From Phaeosaccion multiseriatum (taxonomy: Eukaryota; Protista; Ochrophyta, other classes), in the NCBI GenBank assembly GCA_965112735.1, contig OZ218952.1, positions 2,418,001-2,482,000 of the forward strand: 64,000 bases of DNA, given 5' to 3'. Made by a program: the position numbers and the translations under genes. The notes below the pieces were generated by a model. That model made no database searches, was not told the origin of the DNA, and worked only from the letters and a program-made list of their open reading frames with translations. Positions 1-58,036 of the stretch are shown in pieces. Every line of letters begins with the position of its first letter. Within the stretch, counting starts at the first letter, position 1.

Positions 1-4155
<4,155 letters not shown>

Positions 4156-4635
4156 ACGGAATACGCCAGTGAAGCAGGCGCCCATTCAGGTGTGCATCAG
4201 TGTCAAAGGAGATGAGATGGTTTCGACCGGACCAAGTCCGTGAACGGGCCGGACAGAAGCGAAGCATTGGACTTCGCAGCGACTTACTGCTCCTTCTGTT
4301 GTAAGAGTTTCCTTTGGAAGTGAAGGAAGGGGGGATGGAGGGGGGAGCAGGGGGAGGAGGAGGAGAAGGAGGAGGAGGAGGAGAAGCAGGGGGGGCTGTT
4401 GCGAAAGATGTACTTCGTACAAGTTACATCTCTCGGGGGAGAACTACGCGGGCTGAGGGGAGGAGGCGTGTGTGCGTGCGTGCGTGTGTGCGCGTGCGTG
4501 AGTCGCCGCTCGCGTCGTCGCGTCGTGTACATAGAACAGATTAAATTCCCAATTTGTAAAGAGAACTTATCAATTTTTTAGAAATTCGATTGCGGCTTCA
4601 GATGCGGGCGAGCCGTGAATGGTGCCCGCAACATC

Positions 4636-4999
4636 GTACGACATTGTCTTCCTGCCGCAGTTCAACACCCAGGATATGGTGCGGAGGAGGTAGCCCCGTG
4701 GCTTCAGAAGGATCAACAGCAAGACGGCCAGAGCCATGATGACATGGTCCCACTTTAGGTTTCGCGAGATGCTGAAAGCCAAGGCTCTCGAGAAGGGGAC
4801 CAACGTCGTTATGGTGACAGAGGAGTGCACCTCCAAGGCCTGCTCCGAGTGTGGCGCCGTACGCAACAATCTGGGTGGTGCGAAGGTCTTCCAGTGCCTC
4901 CATTGCAACTTTAGATGCGGGCGAGACGTGAATGGGGCCCGTAACATCTTCATCAAGAGCATTGTGGAACAAGGGTTGACAATGACATGGTCCAGGTGA
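4636..4999 (+). pseudogene. Fanzor2 copy A: C-terminal fragment (RuvC-II, zinc finger, RuvC-III)
   Basis: YDIVFLPQFNTQDMVRRR*PRGFRRINSKTARAMMTWSHFRFREMLKAKA..VVMVTEECTSKACSECG..LGGAKVFQCLHCNFRCGRDVNGARNIFIK. In-frame TAG at 4691-4693. Preceded by an extra RuvC-III fragment at 4587-4635 (DCGFRCGRAVNGARNI). Confidence 0.9.
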
Positions 5000-5134
5000 T
5001 GCCAGAGCGACAAGCGCTGCCAGCCACAAAGCGGACACTCTCCGTGGATTCCAGAGTGTGGAGGATGCGACCGCAAGAAGCAAGGCTGCTGCGCAAAACT
5101 CACTTCGATCCAAGCGGAGGAGAGGGGTGGCATT
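4981..5134 (+). ncRNA. Candidate Fanzor omegaRNA scaffold / right end of copy A
   Basis: Sequence overlapping and following the ORF end, conserved with copy B up to a sharp boundary at ...GGGGT(G/A)GCATT. Position matches the known TnpB/Fanzor RNA location; expression is not shown. Confidence 0.55.
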
Positions 5135-5145
5135 GTTTCTTTTTT

Positions 5146-5310
5146 AATGCTACCCCTCTCCACCGCTTGGATCGACATAAGCTCTGCGCAGCAGCCTTGC
5201 TCCTTGTGGTACTCGTTCGCCTCCTCCACACTCTGGAATCCACGGAGGGTGTCCACTAGCTATGTGGCTGGCAGCGCTTGTCGCCCTGGCATCACCTGGA
5301 CCATGTCATT
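5146..5310 (-). ncRNA. Candidate Fanzor omegaRNA scaffold / right end of copy B
   Basis: Reverse complement aligns to 4981-5134 with two small indels and scattered substitutions, and ends in the same GCATT. Confidence 0.55.
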
Positions 5311-6551
5311 TTAATGCTCCACGATGCTCTTGATGAAGATGTTGCGGGCCCCATTCACGTCTCGCCCGCATCTAAAGTTGCAATGGAGGCACTGGAACAC
5401 CTTTGCACCACCCAGATTGTCTCGTACGGCGCCACACTCGGAGCAGGTCTTGGAGGTGTACTCCTCTGTCACCATAACGACGTTGGTCCCCTCCTCGAGA
5501 GCCTTGGCTTTCAGCATCTCGAGAAACCTAAAGTGGGACCATGTCATCATGGCTCTGGCCGTCTTGCTGTTGATCCTTCTGAAGCCACGGGGTTGCCTCC
5601 TCCGCACCATGTCCTGCGTGTCGAACTGTGGCAGGAAGATAACATCGTACTCTTCGCACATTGCCTTCCTTCCTATGCACATCCTGCTGCACGAGATTCT
5701 CGATCCGCCGGATCGCACGATGCCACGCTCGACGCCGCCGATAGCGGACCTTGGACTTGACGTTCCGATCGACGGATCGAGATTGTAGACGGTCCAGGTG
5801 TGCAAAAAGAGGTCGATACACGCGCCACACATCGCCCGGGGCCACCTCCGTGACAACTCCGTGGTGATCGATGACGGTGTTGAATGTGCGCACGCCTGCT
5901 GGGTCCAACGCGCACACCCCAAGGTTGCTCGCGTCTCCCTCAAAGTCCATCTTCAGACGCCTCTTCTCCGTTACCACTGTCCAGAAAGTCGCACAAAGTG
6001 GCTCCTTCACATCCCTTCCCACCGTCCCCGTCCTCGAGCTCCTCAGTATTCCAACTCTTGCCTGGCACTTTCATGGTCTGCACGTCCTTCTTCCGTCTAT
6101 AGTGCAGGTCGAAGTGGTGTCCGGGGTCTTTCTGGCGCTTGGCGACGTCGCTCTCGTAGGCCTTGACAATCATGACAACATCCACCATCGCCCCGTCCCG
6201 GATCGCCGCTGCCGTCTCCAACACCCACGCTGTTTTGCGCGGAGTTCGCTGGAGCAGCCCGTGGCATCTTCCTCCAGCTGCCCCTGTGCCTTCCCTTTCT
6301 CTTCTTCTTGACGCGCCGCTGCTTGTTGACTCCTCCATATGCACGTGGCTGGGCCCCGATGACCTTGGCGCGAAAGTCTTTCACATTCATTTCGCACTTG
6401 CCCTCCTTGTACATGGATGTCCAGCGGGCAGTCCCAAACCATCTGTTGAGCCTCTCGGTCCAGGCCGGAGTCGGAAGAAGCTTGATGCGCCTGGCACGAT
6501 TCCCGAGCACGCTGTCCGGCGGAACCTCCGTCCTTCTCTTCTTCCTCCATC
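5311..6551 (-). pseudogene. Fanzor2 copy B: near full-length, frameshifted RNA-guided endonuclease
   Basis: Successive frames give RRIKLLPTPAWTERLNRWFGTARW (TnpB N-terminal motif), WVLETAAAIRDGAMVD..KAYESDVAK..FDLHYRRKKD, GVCALDPAGVRTF (RuvC-I, D at about 5903-5905), RRIENLVQQDVHRK, YDVIFLPQF, VTEEYTSKTCSECG..FQCLHC (relocated Glu plus CxxC..CxxC) and RDVNGARNI (RuvC-III). At least 3 frameshifts. Confidence 0.92.
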
Positions 6552-6900
6552 ACCCAGTGGTTCGTGGCCGGAGATCGACGGAGAGAATGGGCGGGGTGCT
6601 CCAAGAAGAAAAAAAGAAAAGAGGATGGAGGAAGAAGAGGAGGACGGAGGTTCCACTGGACAGTGTGCTCGGGAATCGTGCCAGGCGCGTCAAGCTTCAT
6701 CCGACTCCGGCCTGGACCGAAAGGCTCAACCGATGGTTTGGGACTGCGCGCTGGGTCGACCCCTGACACGCTATCGCCCACTTTCTCGATAGCGCGCTAT
6801 CGGCCGCCGGCCGATAGCGGATAGCGCGCGCCGGCTGGCGCCGGGATAGCGTTAGCGTGTCAGGGGTCGAGCTGGACATCCATGTACAAAGGAGGGCAAG
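6552..6900 (+). pseudogene. Inverted Fanzor2 N-terminal fragment with a basic NLS-like stretch, interrupted by a MITE
   Basis: 6624-6900 is a diverged inverted copy of 6397-6551 and encodes EEKKKRGWRKKRRTEVPLDSVLGNRARRVKLHPTPAWTERLNRWFGTARW. Confidence 0.85.
6756..6870. mobile_element. 115-bp MITE inserted in the Fanzor fragment
   Basis: Perfect 18-bp TIR TCGACCCCTGACACGCTA (6756-6773 / 6853-6870). Flanks GCTGGG / GCTGGA. The empty site CGCTGGACATCC is visible in copy B (about 6415-6426, minus strand). Internal GATAGCG/CGCTATC repeats. Confidence 0.9.
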
Positions 6901-7018
6901 CCGCGCGCCATAGTTGGCACCAACTTGATCATTCTCGACCATCCTTTCTGATGGTATCGAGGCACGAAAAGGATGGTCGAGAATGATCAAGGTGGTGCCA
7001 ACTATGCCGCGCGGCTTG
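6897..7018. repeat. Fold-back hairpin: 51-bp arms, 2 mismatches, 20-nt loop
   Basis: 6897-6947 is the reverse complement of 6968-7018. Confidence 0.92.
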
Positions 7019-7320: not shown

Positions 7321-10300
7321 TCACACCACCGTCGTGACCCTCAGTGGTAGCAGGGGCTGCTCTTGGTCAGAGAAGGAGACCCCCCTCGCGAGGGGGCGGT
7401 TCACAGATGGGCTAATCACAGATGGCATTGACGCCGCCTCCGGAGGCACAACAGGCCCAGACTCTGGGAGATAAAGAGAGCCCCTTCGCAACTGCCCGCG
7501 GAGGTGCTGTGGCTTGCGCCGGGCCTCTCTCTCCAGCGCGCCCAGCTCGTCTCCGAGCCGCAGCATACGCTGAAGGTAGATTCCCCCCCCCCCTTCCCCC
7601 TCTCCTCCTCCTCCTCCTCCTCCTCCTCCTCCTCCTCCTCCTCCTCCTCCTCCTCCTCCTCCTCCTCCTCCTCCTCCTCCTCCTCCTCCTCCTCCTCCTC
7701 CTCCTCCTCCTCCTCCTCCTCCTCCTCCTCCTCCTCCTCCTCCTCCTCCTCCTCCTCCTCCTCCTCCTCCTCCTCCTCCTCCTCCTCCTCCTCCTCCTCC
7801 TCCTCCCCCTCCTCCTCCTCCTCCTCCTTCCCCTGCTGCTGGCGATACCGCCTTTGACGTGTTCTTGGCCTTGATCTCTCCTGTGGTTTCTGCCGTCGGC
7901 CCCCCGTAGTCCGCTGCAGGGAGGTGTTGCAGTCGAAGAGACTCGCAGAGCTTCTTGGTGGAGCGCACGAGGGCGTCGTCGCGGAGAATGCTGGTCATGC
8001 CTTGCTTCAACTCCACCAGTGTCACCCACCTGAGTGTGGTCACGAGGAGCAATGAGCGTGTGTGAGAGTGAGCTACTTCGTGAACGGACTGCAGCTACAA
8101 GACCACACACTACTGGGTTCATTACCACCGACAATAGAGAGGGCAGGGAGGGGAGGTTAGGCCTTCCTCACTCCTCCTCCTCCTCCTCCTCCTCCTCCTC
8201 CTCCTCCTCCTCCTCCTCCTCCTCCTCCTCCTCCTCCTCCTCCTCCTCCTCCTCCTCCTCCTCCTCCTCCTCCTCCTCCTCCTCCTCCTCCTCCTCCTCC
8301 TCCTCCTCCTCCTCCTCCTCCTCCTCCTCCTCCTCCTCCTCCTCCTCCTCCTCCTCCTCCTCCTCCTCCTCCTCCTCCTCCTCCTCCTCCTCCTCCTCCT
8401 CCTCCTCCTCCTCCTCCTCCTCCTCCTCCTCCTCCTCCTCCTCCTCCTCCTCCTCCTCCTCCTCCTCCTCCTCCTCCTCCTCCTCCTCCTCCTCCTCCTC
8501 CTCCTCCTCCTCCTCCTCCTCCTCCTCCTCCTCCTCCTCCTCCTCCTCCTCCTCCTCCTCCTCCTCCTCCTCCTCCTCCTCCTCCTCCTCCTCCTCCTCC
8601 TCCTCCTCCTCCTCCTCCTCCTCCTCCTCCTCCTCCTCCTCCTCCTCCTCCTCCTCCTCCTCCTCCTCCTCCTCCTCCTCCTCCTCCTCCTCCTCCTCCT
8701 CCTCCTCCTCCTCCTCCTCCTCCTCCTCCTCCTCCTCCTCCTCCTCCTCCTCCTCCTCCTCCTCCTCCTCCTCCTCCTCCTCCTCCTCCTCCTCCTCCTC
8801 CTCCTCCTCCTCCTCCTCCTCCTCCTCCTCCTCCTCCTCCTCCTCCTCCTCCTCCTCCTCCTCCTCCTCCTCCTCCTCCTCCTCCTCCTCCTCCTCCTCC
8901 TCCTCCTCCTCCTCCTCCTCCTCCTCCTCCTCCTCCTCCTCCTCCTCCTCCTCCTCCTCCTCCTCCTCCTCCTCCTCCTCCTCCTCCTCCTCCTCCTCCT
9001 CCTCCTCCTCCTCCTCCTCCTCCTCCTCCTCCTCCTCCTCCTCCTCCTCCTCCTCCTCCTCCTCCTCCTCCTCCTCCTCCTCCTCCTCCTCCTCCTCCTC
9101 CTCCTCCTCCTCCTCCTCCTCCTCCTCCTCCTCCTCCTCCTCCTCCTCCTCCTCCTCCTCCTCCTCCTCCTCCCCCTCCCTTCATCACCGGCACTCACCC
9201 TCTACTAGCAAGGTCGAGGTACTGCACGAGACTCTCAAGCTCTCCCGCGTTATGGGGACTGCAGAAGTCAACAAAACACAAAGAGTGAGCAGGCAGGAGC
9301 AAGGCCAAGGCGAGGGTCGCATAAGAGGGAAATAAGTTGCCGCGGCCGCAGGGTGGACTCACGCAAGACGTGGCTAATCGTACGGACCATCCATCCTCCT
9401 CCTCTTCCCCCTCCTCCCCCTGCTGCCCTCACCAACAAAGCAAGCCTCCGTCCCGCCCGCCCTTTGCTGTTACACCCCCCCCCAACACACGCACACACAC
9501 ATACACATACACAAACGCGCGCGTCTCTCTTGGCTGCCCTTCTTTCCCACCCTTTCTCCTCCCCTCTCCCCAACCCCCCTCACTCACTCACTCACTAACC
9601 CCCCCCTGCCCCCCACGCGGACTCACACGTTGGCCCTTTGCAGCAGGCCCTGGAGGAGTCTGGAGTCGATTTCGGTAGCCGGCTCGATGCCGCAGCGGAA
9701 GGCGAGGTCGATGAGGCGAAGTCGAACCTTACGAAGGTAACTGTCCAGTGCTTGAAGAATGGTCAAGGTGCCCTGGCTCTTGGCAACGAGTAAGCGCTTG
9801 TGCGATTGGACGATGCGGTGCGCTTCCAGCTCCACTCGTTGAGTCTCTTCGACCTACAGTTTCATGGAAGTGATTGGTTGGTTGGTTGGTTGGTCGGTTG
9901 TTTGATTGGTTTGGTTCGGATTAGGGTTAGGTTTAATTAAAGAAAAAGGAAATCAGAAAGCCCCAAGACCCCAACCCTAAACAAGCTCTTCACGAGCCCA
10001 TAACAAGTCGGTACCAAGCCGTTAACGAGCCGTTCACAAGCCGTTCACAAGCCGTTAACAAGCATCGCCTCGGCATACCTTGCGTTTCTCGGCGCGCTTC
10101 TTGGCTGCGAGTCGGCGAAGATTGATGGGCCGAGATGGACGACCCTCCTGCGGGATGCCCAAGGTGGGGGGGAAATAGAGGGAAAGGCGGGGGGGGGGGG
10201 TTGGGGAGAGAGAGGGGGAAGAGAGAGCGAAAGCGAGGGGAGAGACGGGAGACGGAGAGAGGAGGGAGAGGGAAAGAGACAGAGAGACGAGAGAGTCCCA

Positions 10301-38658: not shown

Positions 38659-40033
38659 GGCTAGCGAGCCTGACCTTGCCTGATACGACAGGGCATGAAT
38701 AGAAAGTAGGCATGAAAATGGCGTCTTGACGGCTTGGGGAAGGGGGGGGTGGGTGCTTCTTAGGTGGTCGGCTCCTTTGAATGGTGTGTATGGATCCCCA
38801 CTCAAGGTATCCAACTCGTCTATAGGGTTGGCATTTATGTCCACTCATCCGAGAAAAAGACAATAGAGAGAGGGGGGGGGCGTACTGAGGCTGTATGCCT
38901 CGAAACGAGACACGTATATAATACTATACTATTTACATCAATCGTCTACAGTTGTACCTTCCTTCCTTGTTCTACCCTTTTCGATCATCGATCAAGTACT
39001 TGTACGTCTATTACTACAATCGCGACTGCAACAACTCCTACCACCACACGTTTGCTTTCCCTGCCCTGAAGCAGACGAATGGGTTGCTCAGACAACCACC
39101 AAGACATCGTAGATCTTCACCTTCTCATCGCCCGCATACCCACTGACTCAGCAGATGCGCTTGTCGACCAAGCGGATCTTGCGGAGGCAGGCACTCGCTG
39201 TGGGAGATGGCCACTGTATCACCGACTGCTTGCTGCCGTTGCTGCCGCTGCTACCGTCATGCCGTGTTGCGTCACTGGCTACTGGTGCTATTACCGCTGC
39301 TGCCGCTGCTGCTGGCTGCTGCTGCCACCTCGGCTAGTTGCTGCCTTGGTGGCCCTACTTTGGGCCGTGCACTTACCAACGCGTGATTCCTCTCGAACGA
39401 CGGTGAGCGCGAGAGGGTCGGTTGCCTGAGCACCTGCGTTTCTTCTTTCCTGCTCACCTCCTCAGTCCGTGAGTGGCCAAGCAACAAGCAAGAAGACCGT
39501 GTCGCCCACTTTGTGTCCCAATGACCACACATTCACGGCGAGGCTTTCCCTCTGCCGGGCGCCCTCCACTCCTCCCTCCTGCCGCTTCTGCTGCGCGAAG
39601 CAGCGGGGCGCGCTTCAATCCTTGTAATTGATGGACCCTTCTCAGAACAGAAAGGGCAACGCTGAAAGACCCCGCCCGCGTGCGTATCCCCCCCAGCCAT
39701 GGCAGCTTACGGCATCAGCGCTTTGGTGGAAGGTTGGCCTCCCCACTCCTCCTCCACAAAAAGCGGCTTAGAAGCCCCCCTCAAGTGGGTGGAAGCCAAC
39801 TGGGCCTCGCTGCTGCTGCTGGCCTGAGCTATTAGCAGCTTCGTGCGGCAACAATGTCGTTTCAAAGTAGGGAGGGAGGGAGCCAGGAGCGGGGGCAGAT
39901 CGCAAAGCGGTTAGGCGTTGGGGCATGGCCTTCAGCGCTCCCTTTGCCACCGCTTCCATACCCCTCTCTCTCTTTCTCTCTCGCGCGCACTCTCTCTTCT
40001 CCCCCCTCCTTCTTTCCCTCTCTACCAAAATGC

Positions 40034-41098
40034 TCAGGACACAATGCAGCACTTTCTGGCGCTCTCGAGCCTCTTGATCTCCTCCTCAAGCTCCTTGACG
40101 AGAACGTCGTGGCGCCTGCCTTCTCTCTTCATGCGACGTTCGAGACGCTCCTTCTGCTCCTTCTCGTCTTCCAACTGAGCCTCTGTGTTGCCGAGCTGAG
40201 CACTGTGCAGCTTTGCCTTCTCCCTCAGTCTCGCATTGTCCTCCACAATGTCTCTGCCGAAGAGGCGCCGCAGGACTTTCCTGCGCGCAGCCTAGAATTT
40301 TACACACAGACACCCACACAGACACACACGACGCACACAAGGCTGCGTGAGTGCCACTGTACTTTTTCGACATGATCTACGACGATTCGCTCTTTACACT
40401 CATGAACAGCAATAGGGACGCTTGCTTAGCGGGGGAGAAAACGAAAGCGCAACGAGAGTCAGCCACGTATGAACGCATGTATACGCCAGCCCTCCCTGGA
40501 AACCCACCTACTCACATCCTTTGTCGTCATGGCCTCCGCGAGCAGTTCCCAGTCTTCGTCAGCCTCTCCGCACCTCATTCGCAGAATGCGATTCTTCACA
40601 TGGCACGCCATCGAAAAAAAAGGGACAGATGTAAGAAGTCTGCTGCAAAGAGGCTTGTCAACAACGAAAGAAAGAGGCCACTGACCTCCAGTCTGAGCAT
40701 GGCCAGCTCACCCAGGGCGTCTTCGACCTCATAAAAGCCGCTCTGCTCCAGCGCCTGAGACAAAGAAGGTAGTGGTAGGTCAGCAAGGGAGCCTTCTTGG
40801 AGCACCAGGGGCCGGGAAGGCAAACACGGTATGATAACTGTCTCACCTGCGTCTTGAGGCGTCCCGCATGCCGATAAAGAGCACAATCAGCCTCGATGGT
40901 CGCCGCATCGAGATCTGCCCCACCTCCCCCCCAGGTAGCCCCAAACTCGTCGGTCATGGACAGAGCAGTGGTGCCCTTCACCACAGACGGCCGCCGCCGC
41001 TGCTGCTGCTTCTGGCTGAAGCTCGTTGCAGCCAGAGGGCTTGCCGGCGTCAGCGTGTCAAAGAAGCTCGAGCCACCTTCTCGACTATTTGGAGCCAT
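40034..41098 (-). CDS. Hypothetical coiled-coil protein, multi-exon, ending in a CaaX-like KCCIVS
   Basis: Approximate exons 41098-40846, 40755-40687, 40595-40517 and 40291-40034 with GT-AG borders. Heptad-rich LEEEIKRLE. Confidence 0.55.
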
Positions 41099-41234
41099 GA
41101 TCTCCAGCGGCTTTCGCCCCTTTGTAGAGCAGTTAAGGGGGGTAGTACAACACGCGAGGGGCGTCGTGTTGTCACAGATTTTGGAGCAGACAGACAGATA
41201 GACAAATCGTCAAATCCACAAAAGAATAAGGGCA

Positions 41235-44200
41235 ATGAAAACGAAAGATGACAATGCCAAGGAGCAGCAGAAGCAGGAGGAGGAGGAGGGGGGTGGTTTG
41301 GGTGAGATGGTCAATGTCCAGGAGTTGGAAGCATGGCCGACGGAGCGGCTGGGGCCCTTCGAAAAGGCAATAGAGAAAGTGCTTGCGAATACGGACATGA
41401 TCATCATGAGCCTGGACGGAGGACTTCCCTCAGGTGCGCTTTCCTCGTTTCTGCACTGTGTACGGTCCTGGCCTGCTGAGTGTGCTAACTCTCTTCCGCG
41501 CCCAATCCATCCACTCCCACACTCCCCCACGCCCCCCCCCCCCCCTTCTTGCGCAGGAGAGGGTAACCACGAATTGGACTACCGACAGACCCTCTTAGCC
41601 ATCGCTCGGAGCTTCGTAGAGGGCGCTACGCTCTTTGTGTGTCAGGATGAGGAGCAGGAGCAGGTGAGAGTGGTTGAGGGTGGACGGAAGGCGGAAGGGC
41701 TTCCCCCCGCGCAACTTTGGCCAAACTTCGTGCACCTAGCGTAATAATAGAACACACACGACGTGCGCCGACGCCGTTTGCGCAAAGAGAGTTGTTCTCT
41801 CGGGAATCTTTGGGGAGACGCTGTGTCTGACACCATACACTCACTCCCACCCTTCTACACATCCCCCCTCACTCCCACCCTTCTCACCTCCCCCTTCCAC
41901 CAGGCGGTCCTTATACGCGTGAGAAGCGCTCGCGTGTGCCCCGACGGCGAGATGCCGCTCGTTGAAGTGGGCTGGGGCACGCAGACGAAGGCCAATTTCA
42001 CAGGCGAGATCTAACATGCGATGCTCCTCATCCAAAGGGAGCGGACACATGAGTGATGGATGGATAAACAGGGTTGGGCAACAGCAAAGGGATCGCGATG
42101 GTCTTCTGCTTCGTTTATTGTGTTGATACGTCGTCTTCCTCTCTTTTCTCTCTCGCGTCATGGCCACACACACCAAGCTTGCCGTGTCGTGCGGACGCCA
42201 ATGCTTTTTTGCTTTGGTTTGAGTAGAAGTGAATAGGTACATAAATACTGCCGTTGGTGTGGCATCGATGGGTGGGGTGGAAGCGCTTCCTCCATCGCGA
42301 TGTCGTGCACATTCCCTTATACCCGTACTCTCTCTCCCTCTCACTCACTCTCTCTCTCACAGGTCACGGAGACGACTACGGAAGGCTGATTCAATTTGAG
42401 CTTGAGGCCGCAAGGCAGAGCCCCGCTGGGAACAGAGGCGTTGTCTCAGTAAGGGGGGACGAAGGCAGGGGCGGAGGAGGGAGGGAAGGAAGGAAGGAGG
42501 GAAGGAAGGAAGGAAGGAAGGAAGGACGGAGGGAACGAAGGAAGAAAGACAGGTCGCTCTCTCTCTCCCTCTCTCTTCGTCTCTCGTACTCACTCACTCA
42601 CACACGCACACACACACATAACACACACTTGGTCTACAGATCAAATCAACGCTGGAGGAGCAGGAGATAATGCTTAAGGCCTTGCGAAAGAACGAGAAAC
42701 GTGTCATCCAGAACGAAGGCGACGAAGGAGGGGGAGGGGGAAAGAAGGGCAACAAGTCCCGAGGGGGGAAGAACAAGGTGGGTTTAGGAGCAAGCGAAAG
42801 GGGGAGAGGCAAGGAGAAGAGTAGGAGAGGGAAGGGAATAGGGGAGGAGGAGAGGGGGACAGAGGGAAGTAAGAGGGAAGGAGAAAGGGACAGGCGACGG
42901 GATAGGAGAGAAGGAGATAGGCGCGAGAGAAAGGGCGAAGGGGTATTGGTGATGATAAGACGATGAAGTGGTCCGTTCCTTCCATCGCCGCAAGAGCCTA
43001 TGGAATATCTTCTGCCTCCTCCCCCACTCCCCTTCTTGTATCTGTACCCCCACCCACGCCCACGCTTACACCCACACCCACACCCACACCCACGCTCGCG
43101 CCCACACCCCCTTTTTTTGATGTCATCCCCTCAGCAGAAGAAGAGCCCCAACCCGCACCCCGATCCCGACCAAAGCCCCAACTTCCCGCCCCCCAGCATC
43201 TCGTCCGAGCACGAGCTCGCCACCCTCCGACCGTCCTTCCTCGTACCCCCCAAAGCACCGCCGAACAACTATGAGAAGAAGGCCCACCGGCCCAAGACGA
43301 AGTGCGCTGTGTGCTCGTCCCCTGCCGGCTTCTCCTGCTCGGTGTGCAAGAGCATGTATTACTGCTGCAGGGACCACCAGACTCAGCACTGGAAAGAGAA
43401 GCACAAGTGAGAGTACACATGGGGGTTAGGCAGGTCGACAGGTCGGCGGGTCGAGATGTTTTGTTGCGAGGTCGATGTGAGCAACCCAGGCAGCAAGCTT
43501 CACAGCCTCCTGATGGGCTCTTCATTGACCCTCCCTCCTCCATCCATATTATCCCGGCGACGGGCTCGTCACTTCACTTCACTCACACCGCTTCCTCTCT
43601 CTTTTCGACGCGACCGCGACTGCGACTGCGACTCCACTCCACTCGACTCAGGCTTGTCTGTGGCAAGAACAGGGGCGCCGGGGCTGGAAAAGAGGCAGGA
43701 GCAGGAGCAAGAGGAGGGGGCAGCAAGGGAGCTCAGAGCAAGGCCAAGGCAAGCAGCAAGAGCATCGACGAGCCTCCGGACGAGGCTGTCCTTGCCTCTC
43801 TGCCCAGTGCATCCATCCCCTTTCAAGCCCCGGAGGATGGGCCCCTCGGGAGTACGCCGCAGCTGGCGAACATCTCCAGGTGATGGGTGGATGGCAATGG
43901 ATGCGTGGATGGCAGTGGATGGGTGAATGGCAATGGATGGATGGGTGGGTGGGTGGGTTGATGGATTGATACGCTACCCCCCCCCCTTGTGATTGTGATG
44001 CATGGACCGGAGACGGGAGGGAAAACAAGATCTCTTTCCGACCTACTCACACAATCACCAACTGCTGCTGTTGCTGTACCGCTGCTTTTGAACCAACCAA
44101 CTGCTGATCCTGCCAAAAAAGGCACGTGGGCACAACTCCTGCGCGTGACCTCGCCAAGCTTGATCGAAACATACACGCCGACAAGCTCTTCGCAGGTCAG

Positions 44201-44699
44201 TGGAGAGGGGGGAGGACTGTGAGTTTATTGTGTGGCGGTTCCCCTCGCCTTCTCTCTCTCCCTCTCGCCTTCTCTCTCTCTCCCTCTCGCCTTCTCTCTC
44301 CCTTCCTCTCGCCTTCTCTCTCTCCCTATCTCTCCCGGGGGCGAGTCTGCACTCATCATCCCCCCCCGTTAGTGTGCGTGTGCGTGTGTCCCCCTGTTCG
44401 CTGCTGTGTGAATTGATGTACGTATCACCAACTGCTTCTCCTGGACCCCCTCAGTGAAAGTGCAAGTACCGATCATGCCCATGGGGGACGGCGGCGCCAT
44501 TTGCATTTACGACCGAGAACGCTCCTTCCAGCGCATCTACTTTGCCGCGGAAGATCGAGAGGAGTACGCCAAGTTATCCACAACTTGCAAACAGGAGGGC
44601 ACCCTCGGCGGGCTCAAAATCTACCTTTGGGCAGTGAGGGAGGGTGTTAACATTCGCATCTTCTTGGACCCCGTCATTGCCCCCCAAGAAGACTGGTGA
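41235..44699 (+). CDS. MYND zinc-finger protein with a conserved C-terminal domain, multi-exon
   Basis: CAVCSSPAGFSCSVCKSMYYCCRDHQTQHWKEKHK|LVC (MYND). C-terminus NIHADKLFA|VKVQ..IYDRERSF..GGLKIYLWA.R..IFLD..W*. Upstream exons link in frame; one intron is GC-AG. Confidence 0.8.
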
Positions 44700-45435
44700 A
44701 AGATTTCTCTTCTCTCATCGTATCCTCTGGGTTGAAGAATCTCTTCCAAGGGGGGACGACGCTCTCTGGCGACGAATATTTCTCTCTCCTTCCCTCTCCC
44801 TCTCTCCTTCTCTCTATCGTCCTCTGTCTCTCCTTGTGCCCCTATCTCTCCCTCTCGGGTGCAGCCAAGTGGCAATTGCTTGCCTCATTTTAACACTCGA
44901 TTTGCGTAAGAATCGCCCAAAGTTATCGGGCGGCAAGGGCGAGTGCTCCTGCGGAAACGCTGAAAACTAGGGAAGGAAGGAAGGGTCGAAAGACGAGAGA
45001 CTATGTGTCGGTAGGCATCTCAGAGAGCTACACGAAGAGCTTCTACATAGCGCTTCTCCCACCATCATTTTGCTGTCCAAAAACTTTATTCAGGCGATTT
45101 GCACGATTTTTGCGCAAATCGAGTGCAACAAATTATTTTTTGCAACAAATTTTTTTTTATTTCGTGCTGAAAAAACGAAAGGCATTTACTCTCGCGTCTA
45201 ATCATTTGAACTCCACCCCCCCGCCTTGTGCCTTCTGCTGCACTCCGATCACCACAAAGCCACACGCCACCTGCCCGCCACGCACATTACTCTCAACACT
45301 CTCCACCGAGCGTACGACTCACCCAGTCACCTCACTCACTCACTGAACAAGTCACTCACTCATTCAAATTTACCACTCACTCATTCCTCAACAAGTCACT
45401 CAACTCAAAAAAAAAAAAAAAAACTGCCCACAAAT

Positions 45436-53524
<8,089 letters not shown>

Positions 53525-54021
53525 CTCTCCTCCTTTGCGCCGGTGTCAGGGACTGCCCTCCCTCCTCCTCTCCCTCCCTCTCGCCCTCCCCTCTTCTCTA
53601 CTTTTGCACCAGCGGCAGGACTCGAGAGGAGGGAAAACCTGTGTCTCTTTCGGTCTCCCCTCTTACTCTACTTTTGCGCCAGCGGAGGATTGCCGTCCGC
53701 AAAAGAAGCGAGGCCCTTTATTCGGGCATATACTTAATACGCTTCCCTGTGTGTCCCCGCCGCTGCTCTACAATTATCTCGACCTACTCTCGACTCCAGA
53801 CTCCAAGGATCGCGCAGTAAGTCAAGGATGTGCCAAATCGTTACTTTTAGGACTTCTGTTACGTTCTCTTCGGCTCCAGACTTCGACCAGACTGGCCTAG
53901 AAGCCTATGCTCTAGGCCCTAGGCCAAGCGGCCGTTGGACGCTCTAGGCCTAGGCCGGCGGCCGTTGGCCGCTCTAGGCCGGCCATTTTTCTCTCTAGGC
54001 CGGCGGTTCTAGGCCTAGGCC

Positions 54022-54120
54022 TTGACCTATCTGATTACTGATTATGGCGCCAGCCCGAGGAAATGGCCGGCGCCAATTATGATTACGGCCGGCGCACACC
54101 GTAATCTTGTCCAGGGTCGA
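54022..54120. mobile_element. Nested MITE copy 1, left TIR partly deleted
   Basis: Ends TAATCTTGTCCAGGGTCGA; shares GATTACTGATTA/CCGGCGC repeats with 54716-54906. Confidence 0.7.
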
Positions 54121-54715
54121 AGGGAGGGAGGGAGGGAGGGAGGGAGGGAGGGAGGGGGGGAGGGAGGGAGGGAGGGAGGGAGGGAGGGAGGGAGGGAGGG
54201 AGGGAGGGAGGGAGGGAGGGAGGGAGGGAGGGAGGGAGGGAGGGAGGGAGGGAGGGAGGGAGGGAGGGAGGGAGGGAGGGAGGGAGGGAGGGAGGGAGGG
54301 AGGGAGGGAGGGAGGGAGGGAGGGAGGGAGGGAGGGAGGGAGGGAGGGAGGGAGGGAGGGAGGGAGGGAGGGAGGGAGGGAGGGAGGGAGGGAGGGAGGG
54401 AGGGAGGGAGGGAGGGAGGGAGGGAGGGAGGGAGGGAGGGAGGGAGGGAGGGAGGGAGGGAGGGAGGGAGGGAGGGAGGGAGGGAGGGAGGGAGGGAGGG
54501 AGGGAGGGAGGGAGGGAGGGAGGGAGGGAGGGAGGGAGGGAGGGAGGGAGGGAGGGAGGGAGGGAGGGAGGGAGGGAGGGAGGGAGGGAGGGAGGGAGGG
54601 AGGGAGGGAGGGAGGGAGGGAGGGAGGGAGGGAGGGAGAGAGGGAGGGAGGGAGGGAGGGAGGGAGGGAGGGAGGGAGGGAGGGAGGGAGGGAGGGGAGG
54701 GAGGGAGGGAGGGAG
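54121..54715. repeat. (AGGG)n microsatellite between the two nested MITEs
   Basis: Seen directly. Confidence 0.95.
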
Positions 54716-54906
54716 TCGACCCTGGACAAGATTATCTGATTACTGACTACGGCCGGCGCAGCCGGCCTGATTACTGATTGTGACCGGCGCCAGCCGGCCT
54801 GGTTGCTTACAGCCGGTGACCAGCCGGCCTGATTACTGATTATGCGCCAGCCGGGGGCTGATTACTGATTACGGCCGGCGCACACCGTAATATTGTCCAG
54901 GGTCGG
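54716..54906. mobile_element. Nested MITE copy 2, about 191 bp
   Basis: Left TCGACCCTGGACAAGATTA and right TAATATTGTCCAGGGTCGG match at 17/19 as an inverted repeat. Internal GATTACTGA repeats. Confidence 0.8.
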
Positions 54907-55702
54907 TCTAGGCCTAGGCTTCTAGGCCAGTCTGGAGCCGATTCTCTGACTTCTGATATCGACTTCTCGCTTCTCGCAAGCCTTTGGGTGGTTGGCAAGA
55001 AGGATATCAATCTGCTAAGGTAAGAGGTCCTTGTTGGCGAAAGGGCTCTCCCACAAGGTCTCTCCACAAGGCTGGAACTGAAACTGGATTGCCCCTTGGC
55101 CCATGCAATGAAATAGCCCTGATGTTCCATCGGAGTTCTGCAGCCTCCGCTGTCGGTAGCACACACAACACAGGCAGAGAGAGAGGGAGCAATGTCGCGG
55201 GGAAGCTGATGCTCATGTAGTAACACTATTGATGAGTGTATTTAAGGTCTTACGAGATGCCAGACGACAAGACACGCGTGGAGGACAAAAGTGCCACCCC
55301 ACCCAAGGTCCAATCCATATCAGCCCCCACACACGACAGCGTCTAGCTACACAAGAAAGACGCAAAGAGAGGTCACCATCGCGGCCCTACACGTGGGGCA
55401 CTTTTGCCGCTGACCACAGTCCTATGGGTACAGCTCTCGAGACACCTCCCCAGCAGATGAACACCCCTTCTCCTGTATCACCAACTGCTGCGGCATGCGC
55501 TTCGGCCCGACTCGGTCCTGCCGCGGCGGCTCTTGCTGCGGGGAAGAGTCACCCCCACCCCGCCCCAGAGTCTCCAAAGCCAGGGCCAGGGGGACGTCTA
55601 GCAAGGAAGGTCGTGCGCAGCTAGCTCAGAAGGTAGGACACTCGGCGGGCTTGTCTACGCAGCAGTACCGAGCGTCAGGTGTGTCAAGTGGGAAAAAATC
55701 GA

Positions 55703-56129
55703 TCATACATTGACAGGGTTGGTGCTTCCGCCATTGTGATGCGGCCTGTTCCTCCCCTTGGAAAAGACTCGAATTCGCTGGCCCGGCTTCACCATACCAC
55801 AGGAGCCTCCCACCACCCCACGCCCGCCCGAAGGATCAAATGCTTCATTACCGCCACCACGGCCTTGTGACGCGGAGGTGATGCCTTCACTCCTCTTGGC
55901 AGCCGCAGCAGCTTTTCTACTCTCCCCCGCCCTGCGCTGCTTGGCATGCCCTCGCGGCACCTCGTCAAGGCCAGCAATGCCCAATCCTGCCTCTGACTGT
56001 GACTGTGAGCCTACTGATGTGCCTGGGGCTGGGGCTGCTGCGAAGCCCCCCCCCCTCGGCCCTCCTCGCCCCGCTGTGTCCGCCCTCCGGCTCACGTCGA
56101 TGGCGGGAGCACCATACCGCCGCCGCCGC

Positions 56130-56174
<45 letters not shown>

Positions 56175-58036
56175 GGCGGCGGCGGCGGAGACTTCTTCTG
56201 ATGCTGCTCCTGCTGATGCTGCTGCTTCAGCTGGCGGTGCCGGGAAGCTCTTCCTCCTCCCGCTTCTCCTCCCACTCCTCCTCCTGCTCCCCCTCCCGCT
56301 CCCCCTCCCGCTCCCCCTCCCGCTCCTCCTCTCACTCCTCCTCCTCCTCCTCCTCCTCCTCCTCCTCCTCCTCCTCCTCCTCCTCCTCCTCCTCCTCCTC
56401 CTCCGGGACCTCCTCCTGCTCCTCCTCCTCCTCCTAATCCTCCTCCTCCTCCTCCTGCTCCTCCTCCTCCCCGTCCTCCTCGTCCTCCTCCCCGTCCTCC
56501 TCTTCCTCTCCTGCCTTCCCTCCTGAGCACCTGCTGCTGCCGGCTCTGTGAGTGCTGCTGTTTGCCATCACTGCCCCACCCAGGCGAGTCGACTTGTCTT
56601 TCGGTACTGTGAGGCGAGGAGTGCGGCATGTGTTGCCCGTCCCCCCTCTCTCTCGTCCCCACCACCGGTGTGGTCTGCGCTCTTTGCCGGAGGGGAGGGG
56701 CCACGAAGACTTCCACTGCCCCTATTGTATTGCCACCGTGGGGCTCTCTCATGGACGAGGAGAGGCCCTGACAACGAGAATGAGGCGAGGGGGGGGAGAG
56801 TTCCTCCTTCTCCGTTCCTACAGCGGCTGAATTCATCTGCGCTCTCTTCTTCCGACCTCGACCGGCCCCACGCGCATCCTCAGCAGCACCTTTCTTTGCA
56901 GGGAGCGGCGATCTATTTCGCCCCGGCTGTGGCAGCGCTCTCAAAGAAGCATCATGGTCATCATCACTATCGGGACAACCGCTGCTGCTGCTGCTGCTTG
57001 CCCAATTGCGTTTCGTCAAGCCTCGTTCTCGTGCCCTTCTTTTCCTCCTCTCCCTCTTGCTCTCCGTCGTCGCTTGGCCTCCTCCGGTCGTCACTTCACA
57101 GGCTGGTGCTTCATCACCGGTTTCACTTGGGCTTACTCTTCGTCTTATCCCCCTCCTGCTGCTACTACTACTACTACTACTGCTGCTACTACTACTACTA
57201 CTTCTACCGTCATCCTCCAGCCCTGCAGCAATCCCTATCGTATCGACTTGCTGCTGCTGACGCACCTCCTGGTGTGCTTGATCCTGTTCTCTTCGAGTGG
57301 GGTCAAAAACTCCGCCCTCCCCTTCCCCACTTTTGGAAAGTGCAGCGGCGGAATCGACCCCCCGCCTCCTACGATCTCTAATGTTTTTCAGAGCACTGAC
57401 CCCTTGAACCTTACCCGTACAAATCATCGCTGCTTGCGCGCCCTCTGCTCTCGCTTCGGACCCCCCCCCTGCGGTTGCTACTGCTATCGAGCGATGGACG
57501 GGGTCCATTTCCTTCTCCCTTGCATCCGTCTCTTCCTCCTGCTCCCCTCCATTCTCTTCTCCCCCCCCCTCGTCACCACCCCTGTCACTGTCATCGCCGT
57601 CTTCTGTGCTCCGCCACCGCAGTGCTCTCCTGTCCTTCCGGGTCAGGCGGACACGCTGTGGAGGTACACTACCGCTCATATCCTCCTCACTGTCCTCATT
57701 CCAGCCATCGCTGCTCTCATAATACTCGTCCCGCGGGTTTGCCAGCCCCTGCCGTCTCCCGTCGCCTCCGTAACCCCCTGCCGCTACTTGTACGCCCCCC
57801 CCGCTGGTGCCACTTCTACCGCCGAACCTTCCCGCCTGCTGCATCTGCTGCTGCATCAGCTCGTCGTGTCGCCTCTCCCTCTCCTCCTCTTCCTCCGTCC
57901 TCCGAAGACCCTCCCGGACCAAATCGTTGAAGGCCTCGACACCTCCTTCGATGCCCCTCCAACTGCCATTCGAGCTGCGCATAGCCCGGATGACGGAGGC
58001 AGCATGGCTCCTGGAAGTGACTGCAACGCTTTCCAT
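55703..58036 (-). CDS. Hypothetical low-complexity, probably disordered protein; 3' end may be spliced
   Basis: 777-codon ORF; no recognisable domain. Confidence 0.55.

Follow-up and report, generated by a model that had tools for sequence, protein, structure and literature searches.

Genes of the TnpB/Fanzor type carry their guide RNA in the 3' flank. In the window, by which we mean the whole 64-kb stretch of DNA analyzed here, two Fanzor-like gene ends face each other tail to tail and stop resembling each other at the motif GCATT. Does this motif mark the place where an element and the scaffold of its guide RNA end, or the place where DNA was rearranged? A sequence-only reading had taken GCATT for the right end of the element and the junction between scaffold and guide, with the guide of each copy made of the spacer plus the terminus of the other copy, an idea that depends on GCATT being that right end. 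If it were, the locus would show directly where scaffold and guide meet in an algal Fanzor2, and this boundary is the piece usually missing when Fanzor nucleases get tested. Our analysis leads to another answer: GCATT is most likely the center of a local inverted duplication, and neither a transposon end nor a guide-RNA junction is proven there.

The gene-end locus is an imperfect palindrome of ~1 kb, composed of two decayed Fanzor2 copies lying tail to tail (Table 1). Its arms form a single BLAST alignment of 510 columns with 90% identity (overall they are about 90-92% alike), and both match Pfam entry PF07282 (Cas12f1-like TNB) with E values of 1.6e-20 in the right copy, R, and 8.7e-20 in the left copy, L. 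Similarity stops exactly at ...GATCCAAGCGGAGGAGAGGGGTGGCATT on the left (5134), where the arm end reads ...GGGGTGGCATT, GGCATT, and at ...GATCCAAGCGGTGGAGAGGGGTAGCATT on the right (5146, minus strand), where it reads ...GGGGTAGCATT, AGCATT. The two facing Fanzor 3' ends, the abrupt stop at GCATT and the 11-nt spacer described by the sequence-only reading were thus all recovered. Its tail length of 155-165 nt holds for the right copy (165 nt) and not for the left, which measures 135 nt from its own TGA; a left tail of 154 nt results only when counting starts where the stop of R aligns. The coding parts of L and R are 94% identical over 336 nt, and the tails differ by 13 substitutions in 154 aligned nt (8.4%) and by two indels of 4 and 7 nt; a further 5-nt indel at the stop codon displaced the stop of R.

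Table 1 Features of the Fanzor2-like locus (positions in the window)
Feature	Position	Strand	Remarks
Fragment X, 50 nt from another Fanzor zinc-finger/RuvC-III region, FDCGFRCGRAVNGARNI	4586-4635	+	Abuts the start of the left arm
Left arm of the tail-to-tail palindrome	4636-5134	+	BLAST alignment with the right arm
Copy L, coding part, RuvC-II to C terminus only, last ~120 codons	4636-4999	+	5'-truncated
Left noncoding tail, 135 nt, ends GGCATT	5000-5134	+	Counted from TGA 4997-4999
Predicted stem with a small hairpin inside	5039-5041/5076-5078, 5044-5047/5071-5074	+	RNAalifold, pair probabilities
Palindrome center, unique spacer GTTTCTTTTTT, 11 nt	5135-5145	None	
Right arm of the tail-to-tail palindrome	5650-5146	-	BLAST alignment with the left arm
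Right noncoding tail, 165 nt, ends AGCATT (minus strand)	5146-5310	-	Counted from TAA 5313-5311
Copy R, near full-length Fanzor2/IS607-TnpB-like gene	5311-6510	-	N-terminal RRIKLLPTPAWTERLNRWFGTARW, then ALDPAGVRTF, EEYTSKTC, CGRDVNGARNI
5' leader of R, reaching the head-to-head palindrome's inner edge	6511-6551	-	
Spacer of the head-to-head palindrome, 72 nt	6552-6623	None	At least 6579-6623 contiguous with T in the paralogous contig
Copy T, third copy, with its 5' leader and opening ~40 codons	6624-6900 (6624-6754, 6871-6900)	+	MITE-interrupted

A palindrome of such size is far beyond chance, and we evaluated whether it was created during assembly. Palindromes are known from long-read chimeras, and the runs supporting this one all come from one sample, which may be the source of the assembly as well. 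We nevertheless regard an assembly artifact as scarcely credible, since the arms differ by 8-10% plus indels, unlike an artifactual foldback, and since a 457-nt Logan contig (a de Bruijn contig, in three runs) spans positions 4912-5368 and crosses the center without differences. A further run, X5, contained none of the locus. Because of this contig, we conclude that the tail-to-tail junction is real DNA and no long-read chimera. In the whole window, short-spacer palindromes number only three, and all lie within 4.6-7.0 kb.

We then analyzed the sequences of the encoded proteins. The arms encode the C-terminal TNB/RuvC-III part of an IS607-type TnpB/Fanzor2 protein, with zinc ribbon and RuvC-III motifs (CxxC...CxxC, RDxNGAxNI) present in both L and R as CSECG...CLHCNFRCGRDVNGARNI. 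R also has a RuvC-I motif of the D-P-G type (CALDPAGVRTF) and a TnpB-like N terminus, and a tblastn search with P0005 matched R over residues 4-352 of the query, with a gap at about residues 97-152. The frame of R is broken at least three times (near 5665-5680, near 6000, and near 6250-6290), the first of these breaks leaving no space for an intron. L begins mid-ORF, joined directly to fragment X, contains an in-frame TAG, and has its otherwise invariant EEYTSKTC motif altered from Y to C and from T to A. T is 93-97% identical to R. None of the three copies has an intact ORF, each being truncated or frameshifted, and the locus as a whole is an alternating array, with X and L forward, R inverted, and T forward.

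Fragment X is a fourth Fanzor fragment, in which the catalytic RuvC-III aspartate is changed from D to A (GRAVNGARNI). It is 86% identical to 4899-4948 and 88% identical to 5338-5387, with a weak tblastn match, and its divergence of 12-14% from L and R marks it as older than the L/R/T set or as further degraded. Ahead of their first codon, R and T (6511-6551 and 6624-6664) read in frame as a basic, NLS-like stretch, WRKKRRTEVP(P/L)DS; an ATG at 6550 sits in a different frame from the TnpB-like N terminus.

The evidence for an element end at GCATT depends on how many copies share it. In the read contigs of four runs, the tail has no third copy with an identity of at least 80%. Between 5076 and 5257, the depths of all contigs add up to no more than the depth of the one contig that spans the junction (106.5 in X1), and the surplus depth over the coding parts is mostly cross-mapping between the two arms. 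The tail "family" thus has only two members, which mirror each other across 11 nt, and this argues for a rearrangement. Because similarity stops abruptly at the center of any palindrome, such a stop at GCATT does not speak for an element end, and the locus serves as a caution that a palindrome center mimics an element end.

The other side of R could be examined with an additional copy. A second palindrome lies there head to head (6421-6551 and 6624-6754, 93% identical, 72-nt spacer), in which the 5' leader and first 30 codons of R are repeated in T; T then resumes at 6871-6900, past an inserted MITE. A paralogous contig (1148-1190 nt, about 87% identical, depth 113.1) covers the R-like body at 6026-6166 and 6355-6502 and then switches strand, running from 6645 back to 6579 and differing at 6609-6610; its joints are 6502/6645 (opposite strands) and 7002/6579. 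In this paralogue, the 5' end of the gene adjoins the sequence that forms the 72-nt spacer here, over 45 nt or more. Since the contig runs from the 5' end of the gene into the spacer, the spacer belongs to the lineage of T. The stop of similarity between R and T (6551/6624) is a rearrangement junction and not an element end. Shared sequence continuing past the boundary, which the sequence-only reading had named as the sign of a rearrangement junction, was thus found, but on the head side.

Several repeats surround the Fanzor relics. The MITE inside T (6755-6870, 116 bp) has terminal inverted repeats TCGACCCCTGACACGCTA... and a 5-bp duplication, GCTGG; its summed contig depth of 40,000-57,000, against about 110 for single-copy sequence, implies hundreds of genomic copies. 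Directly after T lies a palindromic element (6897-7018) whose 51-nt arms are 96% complementary and enclose a 20-nt loop, and a similar palindromic piece lies beside the Fanzor 5' flank of the paralogous contig (joints 7002/6579 and 6962/7048). Simple repeats are abundant: very long (CCT)n/(GGA)n microsatellites at 7590-7830 and 8120-9190 (the second exceeding 1 kb), and (CCAT)n at 3300-3420 together with GT/GA runs.

We propose that the locus probably arose by local inverted triplication, or by two foldback events, of one Fanzor2-like gene that subsequently decayed, GCATT being a breakpoint. Rearrangements of the DUP-TRP/INV-DUP type have an inverted middle copy and involve foldback priming or template switching. 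Here, foldback or template switching, in the course of replication or of break repair, would have inverted the middle copy, and later decay would have truncated L and T, inserted two MITEs and frameshifted R. GCATT would be the inner breakpoint, the 11 nt a loop or a stub contiguous with one arm, and the 135-165-nt tail simply the sequence between the 3' end of the ancestral gene and that breakpoint. The tail may include part of the former guide-RNA region, its end not being defined by the locus. We infer this mechanism from the anatomy, and we also infer that a single event was involved. Hallmarks of inverted duplication are seen at the head junction (inverted arms, and a spacer that continues one arm in the paralogue), and the rearrangement is further supported by the junction at the 5' boundary of R, by the outer end of L lying mid-ORF, and by the occurrence of all three palindromes in one locus. 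The tail side may be read as a junction by analogy with the head side, because no third copy shows sequence past GCATT. Against the rearrangement, the inner boundaries hug the gene, at 41 nt upstream of its start and 135-165 nt beyond its stop, just where real element ends would be expected, so that arbitrary breakpoints this close to it require a mild coincidence. As it stands, the locus tells us that the genome holds decayed Fanzor2-like copies, probably arranged by local inverted duplication.

Boundaries just outside the gene, a strictly alternating order and equal divergences would also be found in the integrated and decayed remnant of a concatemer of hairpin-ended or foldback-replicating DNA, the unit ends then being real replicon ends. 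We consider such an origin very unlikely, as both spacers are nonpalindromic, the head spacer is part of one arm in the paralogue, and most relatives carry a serine recombinase instead, which adjoins the gene in 115 of the 162 relative loci fetched. We know of no hairpin-ended or foldback replicon among IS607/Fanzor2 elements. A retrocopy or twin-priming origin ranks only as a minor alternative. A retrocopy was suggested by the strand of the right copy, which reads GCATT and then AAAAAAGAAAC: GCATT would be the polyadenylation site of the Fanzor mRNA, and these A-rich 11 nt the poly(A) remnant of a retrocopy that later folded back. This is highly improbable, given that the A-run is very short and impure, that the 5' leader of R is shared with T and the paralogue, and that the left arm cannot bear poly(A) on its own strand; in addition, no target-site duplication around R was seen when its flanks were read.

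The remaining alternative is that two Fanzor2-type elements inserted independently and that GCATT is their true right end, where a lineage-specific omegaRNA scaffold would stop and the guide would begin in the flank. We looked for traces of it in the divergence between the copies. L and R differ at 20 of 336 coding nt (7, 2, and 11 at the three codon positions; dN/dS, 0.2), a synonymous bias that favors independent right ends, as it fits two lineages diverging while functional somewhat better than it fits a copy L that was dead from birth, as the rearrangement would have it. Indels number 0 in the 336 coding nt versus three in the tail, including the one at the stop codon. At the head, R and T differ at 4 of 41 nt in the leader and at 5 of 90 coding nt. 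The divergences are alike (6% for L-R coding, 8.4% for the tail, and 6.9% for the R-T head), and the equal divergence of the L-R and R-T pairs fits a single event. Among the nonsynonymous differences that can be polarized against relatives, 6 of 7 fall in L, including the stop codon and the EEYTSKTC changes, which is the pattern to be expected of an L that never functioned beside an R still under constraint. Using the tail rate as neutral, a model in which R is constrained and L has evolved neutrally since it arose gives about 12 nonsynonymous and 7 synonymous differences; the 9 and 11 observed are an acceptable fit, and the absence of indels in the coding part of L is mildly unexpected. The divergence pattern does not separate local duplication from independent insertion.

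We next considered the tails as RNA. On the sense strand, the tail begins at the stop codon, which is the position of an omegaRNA scaffold. Its position and length fit both the reRNA of ISXfa1, which has about 150 nt and extends ~17 nt past the transposon boundary (bioRxiv 10.1101/2023.08.09.552727), and the noncoding conservation of mimivirus Fanzor2, which reaches the right inverted repeat ~200 nt downstream of the ORF (PMC10530073); this, too, favors independent right ends. Among the sequencing runs that contain the stretch, none is recorded as RNA. The folding energy of the tails is no better than that of shuffled sequences (z of +1.2 and +1.0), and the scaffolds of relatives score similarly (z of -1.9 to +0.3), so the test has no power and we rejected it as evidence either way. 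Rfam matches were likewise set aside, being sub-threshold hits to miRNA precursors only, produced by the palindrome itself.

The substitutions were more informative. RNAalifold predicted 41 pairs for the two tails, with 8 of the 13 substitutions located in pairs and all 8 keeping the pair, and both tail indels sit in unpaired columns of this two-sequence consensus. Two are double changes: a compensatory U-A/C-G at 5039-5078 (U-A on the left, C-G on the right, at 5248-5202), and a U-A/G-U in a stem turned into three wobble pairs in the right copy. In 1000 simulations with random substitutions and recomputed folds, kept pairs received at least 8 substitutions in 0.9% of runs (p 0.009), and at least 2 double changes arose in 2.7% (p 0.027); the antisense strand shows no double change. 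This excess of pair-preserving changes is an argument for independent right ends and against the rearrangement. On the opposing side, the single-sequence minimum free energy folds of the two tails have just 4 pairs in common, the consensus pairs have mean probabilities of 0.10-0.14, and the own fold of the right tail is 18 kcal/mol better than the consensus fold. The stem at 5039-5047/5071-5078 is the only one with appreciable pairing probability in both tails (~0.9 right, ~0.3 left). Between the two stems put forward by the sequence-only reading, CTCC..GGAG is kept in both copies and the closing stem ATGC..GCAT is broken in the right one, where ATGC became AGGC without a compensating change. 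We take the pair-keeping pattern as a weak but real hint that the tail may once have been under selection as RNA; on where such a putative RNA ended, the predicted pairs are silent. Overall, an omegaRNA in the tail is possible, if on balance doubtful.

A scaffold shared with relatives would give the tail an independent reference. The closest proteins are IS607-type TnpB/Fanzor2, with metagenomic relatives at 57-62% identity, and further matches come from Chloropicon primus (the second-best named match), Chlorella, cyanobacteria, and giant viruses. A protein word search returned no relative above 60% identity and none from Phaeosaccion multiseriatum; relatives in viral contigs were at most 51% identical, and no exact match to the tail was found there. 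In a set of 82 metagenomic loci (80 plus L001 and L002), ~20, including the closest (L003, L001, L002, and L004/5), have a common 3' scaffold, which comprises, in order, a variable stem-loop, the hairpin GYTGGGRCYTACCCC, a second stem-loop, and TGCA. The alignment of L003, L068, and L002 extends ~190-220 nt further, to an end that they share, TTTTTATAWAGGCG (a variant in L068), and L033, L038, and L042 diverge exactly after TGTAGGCGT, a right end defined by these independent copies. The motif ...TGTAGGCGT or TATAGGCGC is common to L033, L038, L042, L079, L003, L002, and L068 (the last as a variant).

RNAalifold on a MAFFT alignment of 15 of the relatives' scaffolds recovered the central hairpin only, and we therefore compared the tails with the relatives by nhmmer, pattern search, and local alignment instead of a covariance model. 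The relatives' right-end motif is absent from the tails of the window (best match, 2-4 mismatches in 8-10 nt), as is their ...TAGGCG end. For the scaffold core, GGGRCYT..CCC, nhmmer gave no match in the tails and the pattern is absent, with 4-5 mismatches at best. Local alignments of the tails with the relatives' scaffold reached z values of 2.4 or less, against 3.8-21 for the relatives among themselves. The copy-defined core and right-end motif of the relatives can serve as a positive control for intact Fanzor genes of this genome.

These results bear directly on two independent insertions, which we judge unlikely: the core hairpin and end motif of the closest relatives are lacking; the copies are only two, adjacent and mirroring each other; the head-side boundary of R is demonstrably a junction; and the closing stem is broken in the right copy, with both genes dead. 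Also counting against such insertions, no serine-recombinase tnpA was found in the 64-kb window (tblastn with the resolvase of a relative; best E, 1.0), the two ends of unit R (LE and RE) do not form a terminal inverted repeat, and a reading of its flanks revealed no target-site duplication. The two ideas could be combined, with a lineage-specific scaffold truly ending at GCATT, unrelated to that of the IS607 relatives, and a nuclease that cuts at or near the right ends of its family, so that foldback healing would yield tail-to-tail pairs; we find this very unlikely. The claim that GCATT is the right end of an element and a scaffold/guide junction is thus left unsupported by two mirror copies, a left arm that starts mid-ORF and relatives that end otherwise, and the right end and the guide drawn from it are, judged by context, unlikely.

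Compared with known systems, the proteins resemble Fanzor2 and the "pro-Fanzor" IS607-type TnpB in their TNB zinc ribbon and RuvC motifs (PMC3627910; bioRxiv 10.1101/2023.08.09.552727), and differ from the IS607-type TnpB relatives by the lack of a neighboring serine recombinase, by truncated or frameshifted copies, and by an unrelated 3' flank. Like the omegaRNA, reRNA, or fRNA regions of ISXfa1 and mimivirus ApmFNuc (PMC10530073), the tail is a sense-strand sequence of 135-165 nt directly 3' of the ORF; unlike the omegaRNA of the relatives, it is without their stem-loops, GYTGGGRCYTACCCC, TGCA, and the ...TGTAGGCGT or TATAGGCGC end. Elements with a tyrosine or serine recombinase transposase, including IS607, are without terminal inverted repeats and target-site duplications (Bao & Jurka 2013, PMC3627910), and Fanzor2* elements that possess both exist in Chloropicon primus and in molluscs (Yoon et al., bioRxiv 10.1101/2023.08.09.552727). 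Our locus is like the Chloropicon Fanzor2* transposons in being a Fanzor-only unit without TnpA in an alga, and unlike those of Chloropicon and molluscs in that R has no terminal inverted repeat and its flanks, on reading, no visible target-site duplication. Although far smaller than the human DUP-TRP/INV-DUP cases, with a unit of 1.4 kb and a mechanism read from anatomy alone, the locus is like such rearrangements in its forward-inverted-forward order, its copies of equal age, its arbitrary outer ends, and its short asymmetric junction spacers, one of which continues an arm.
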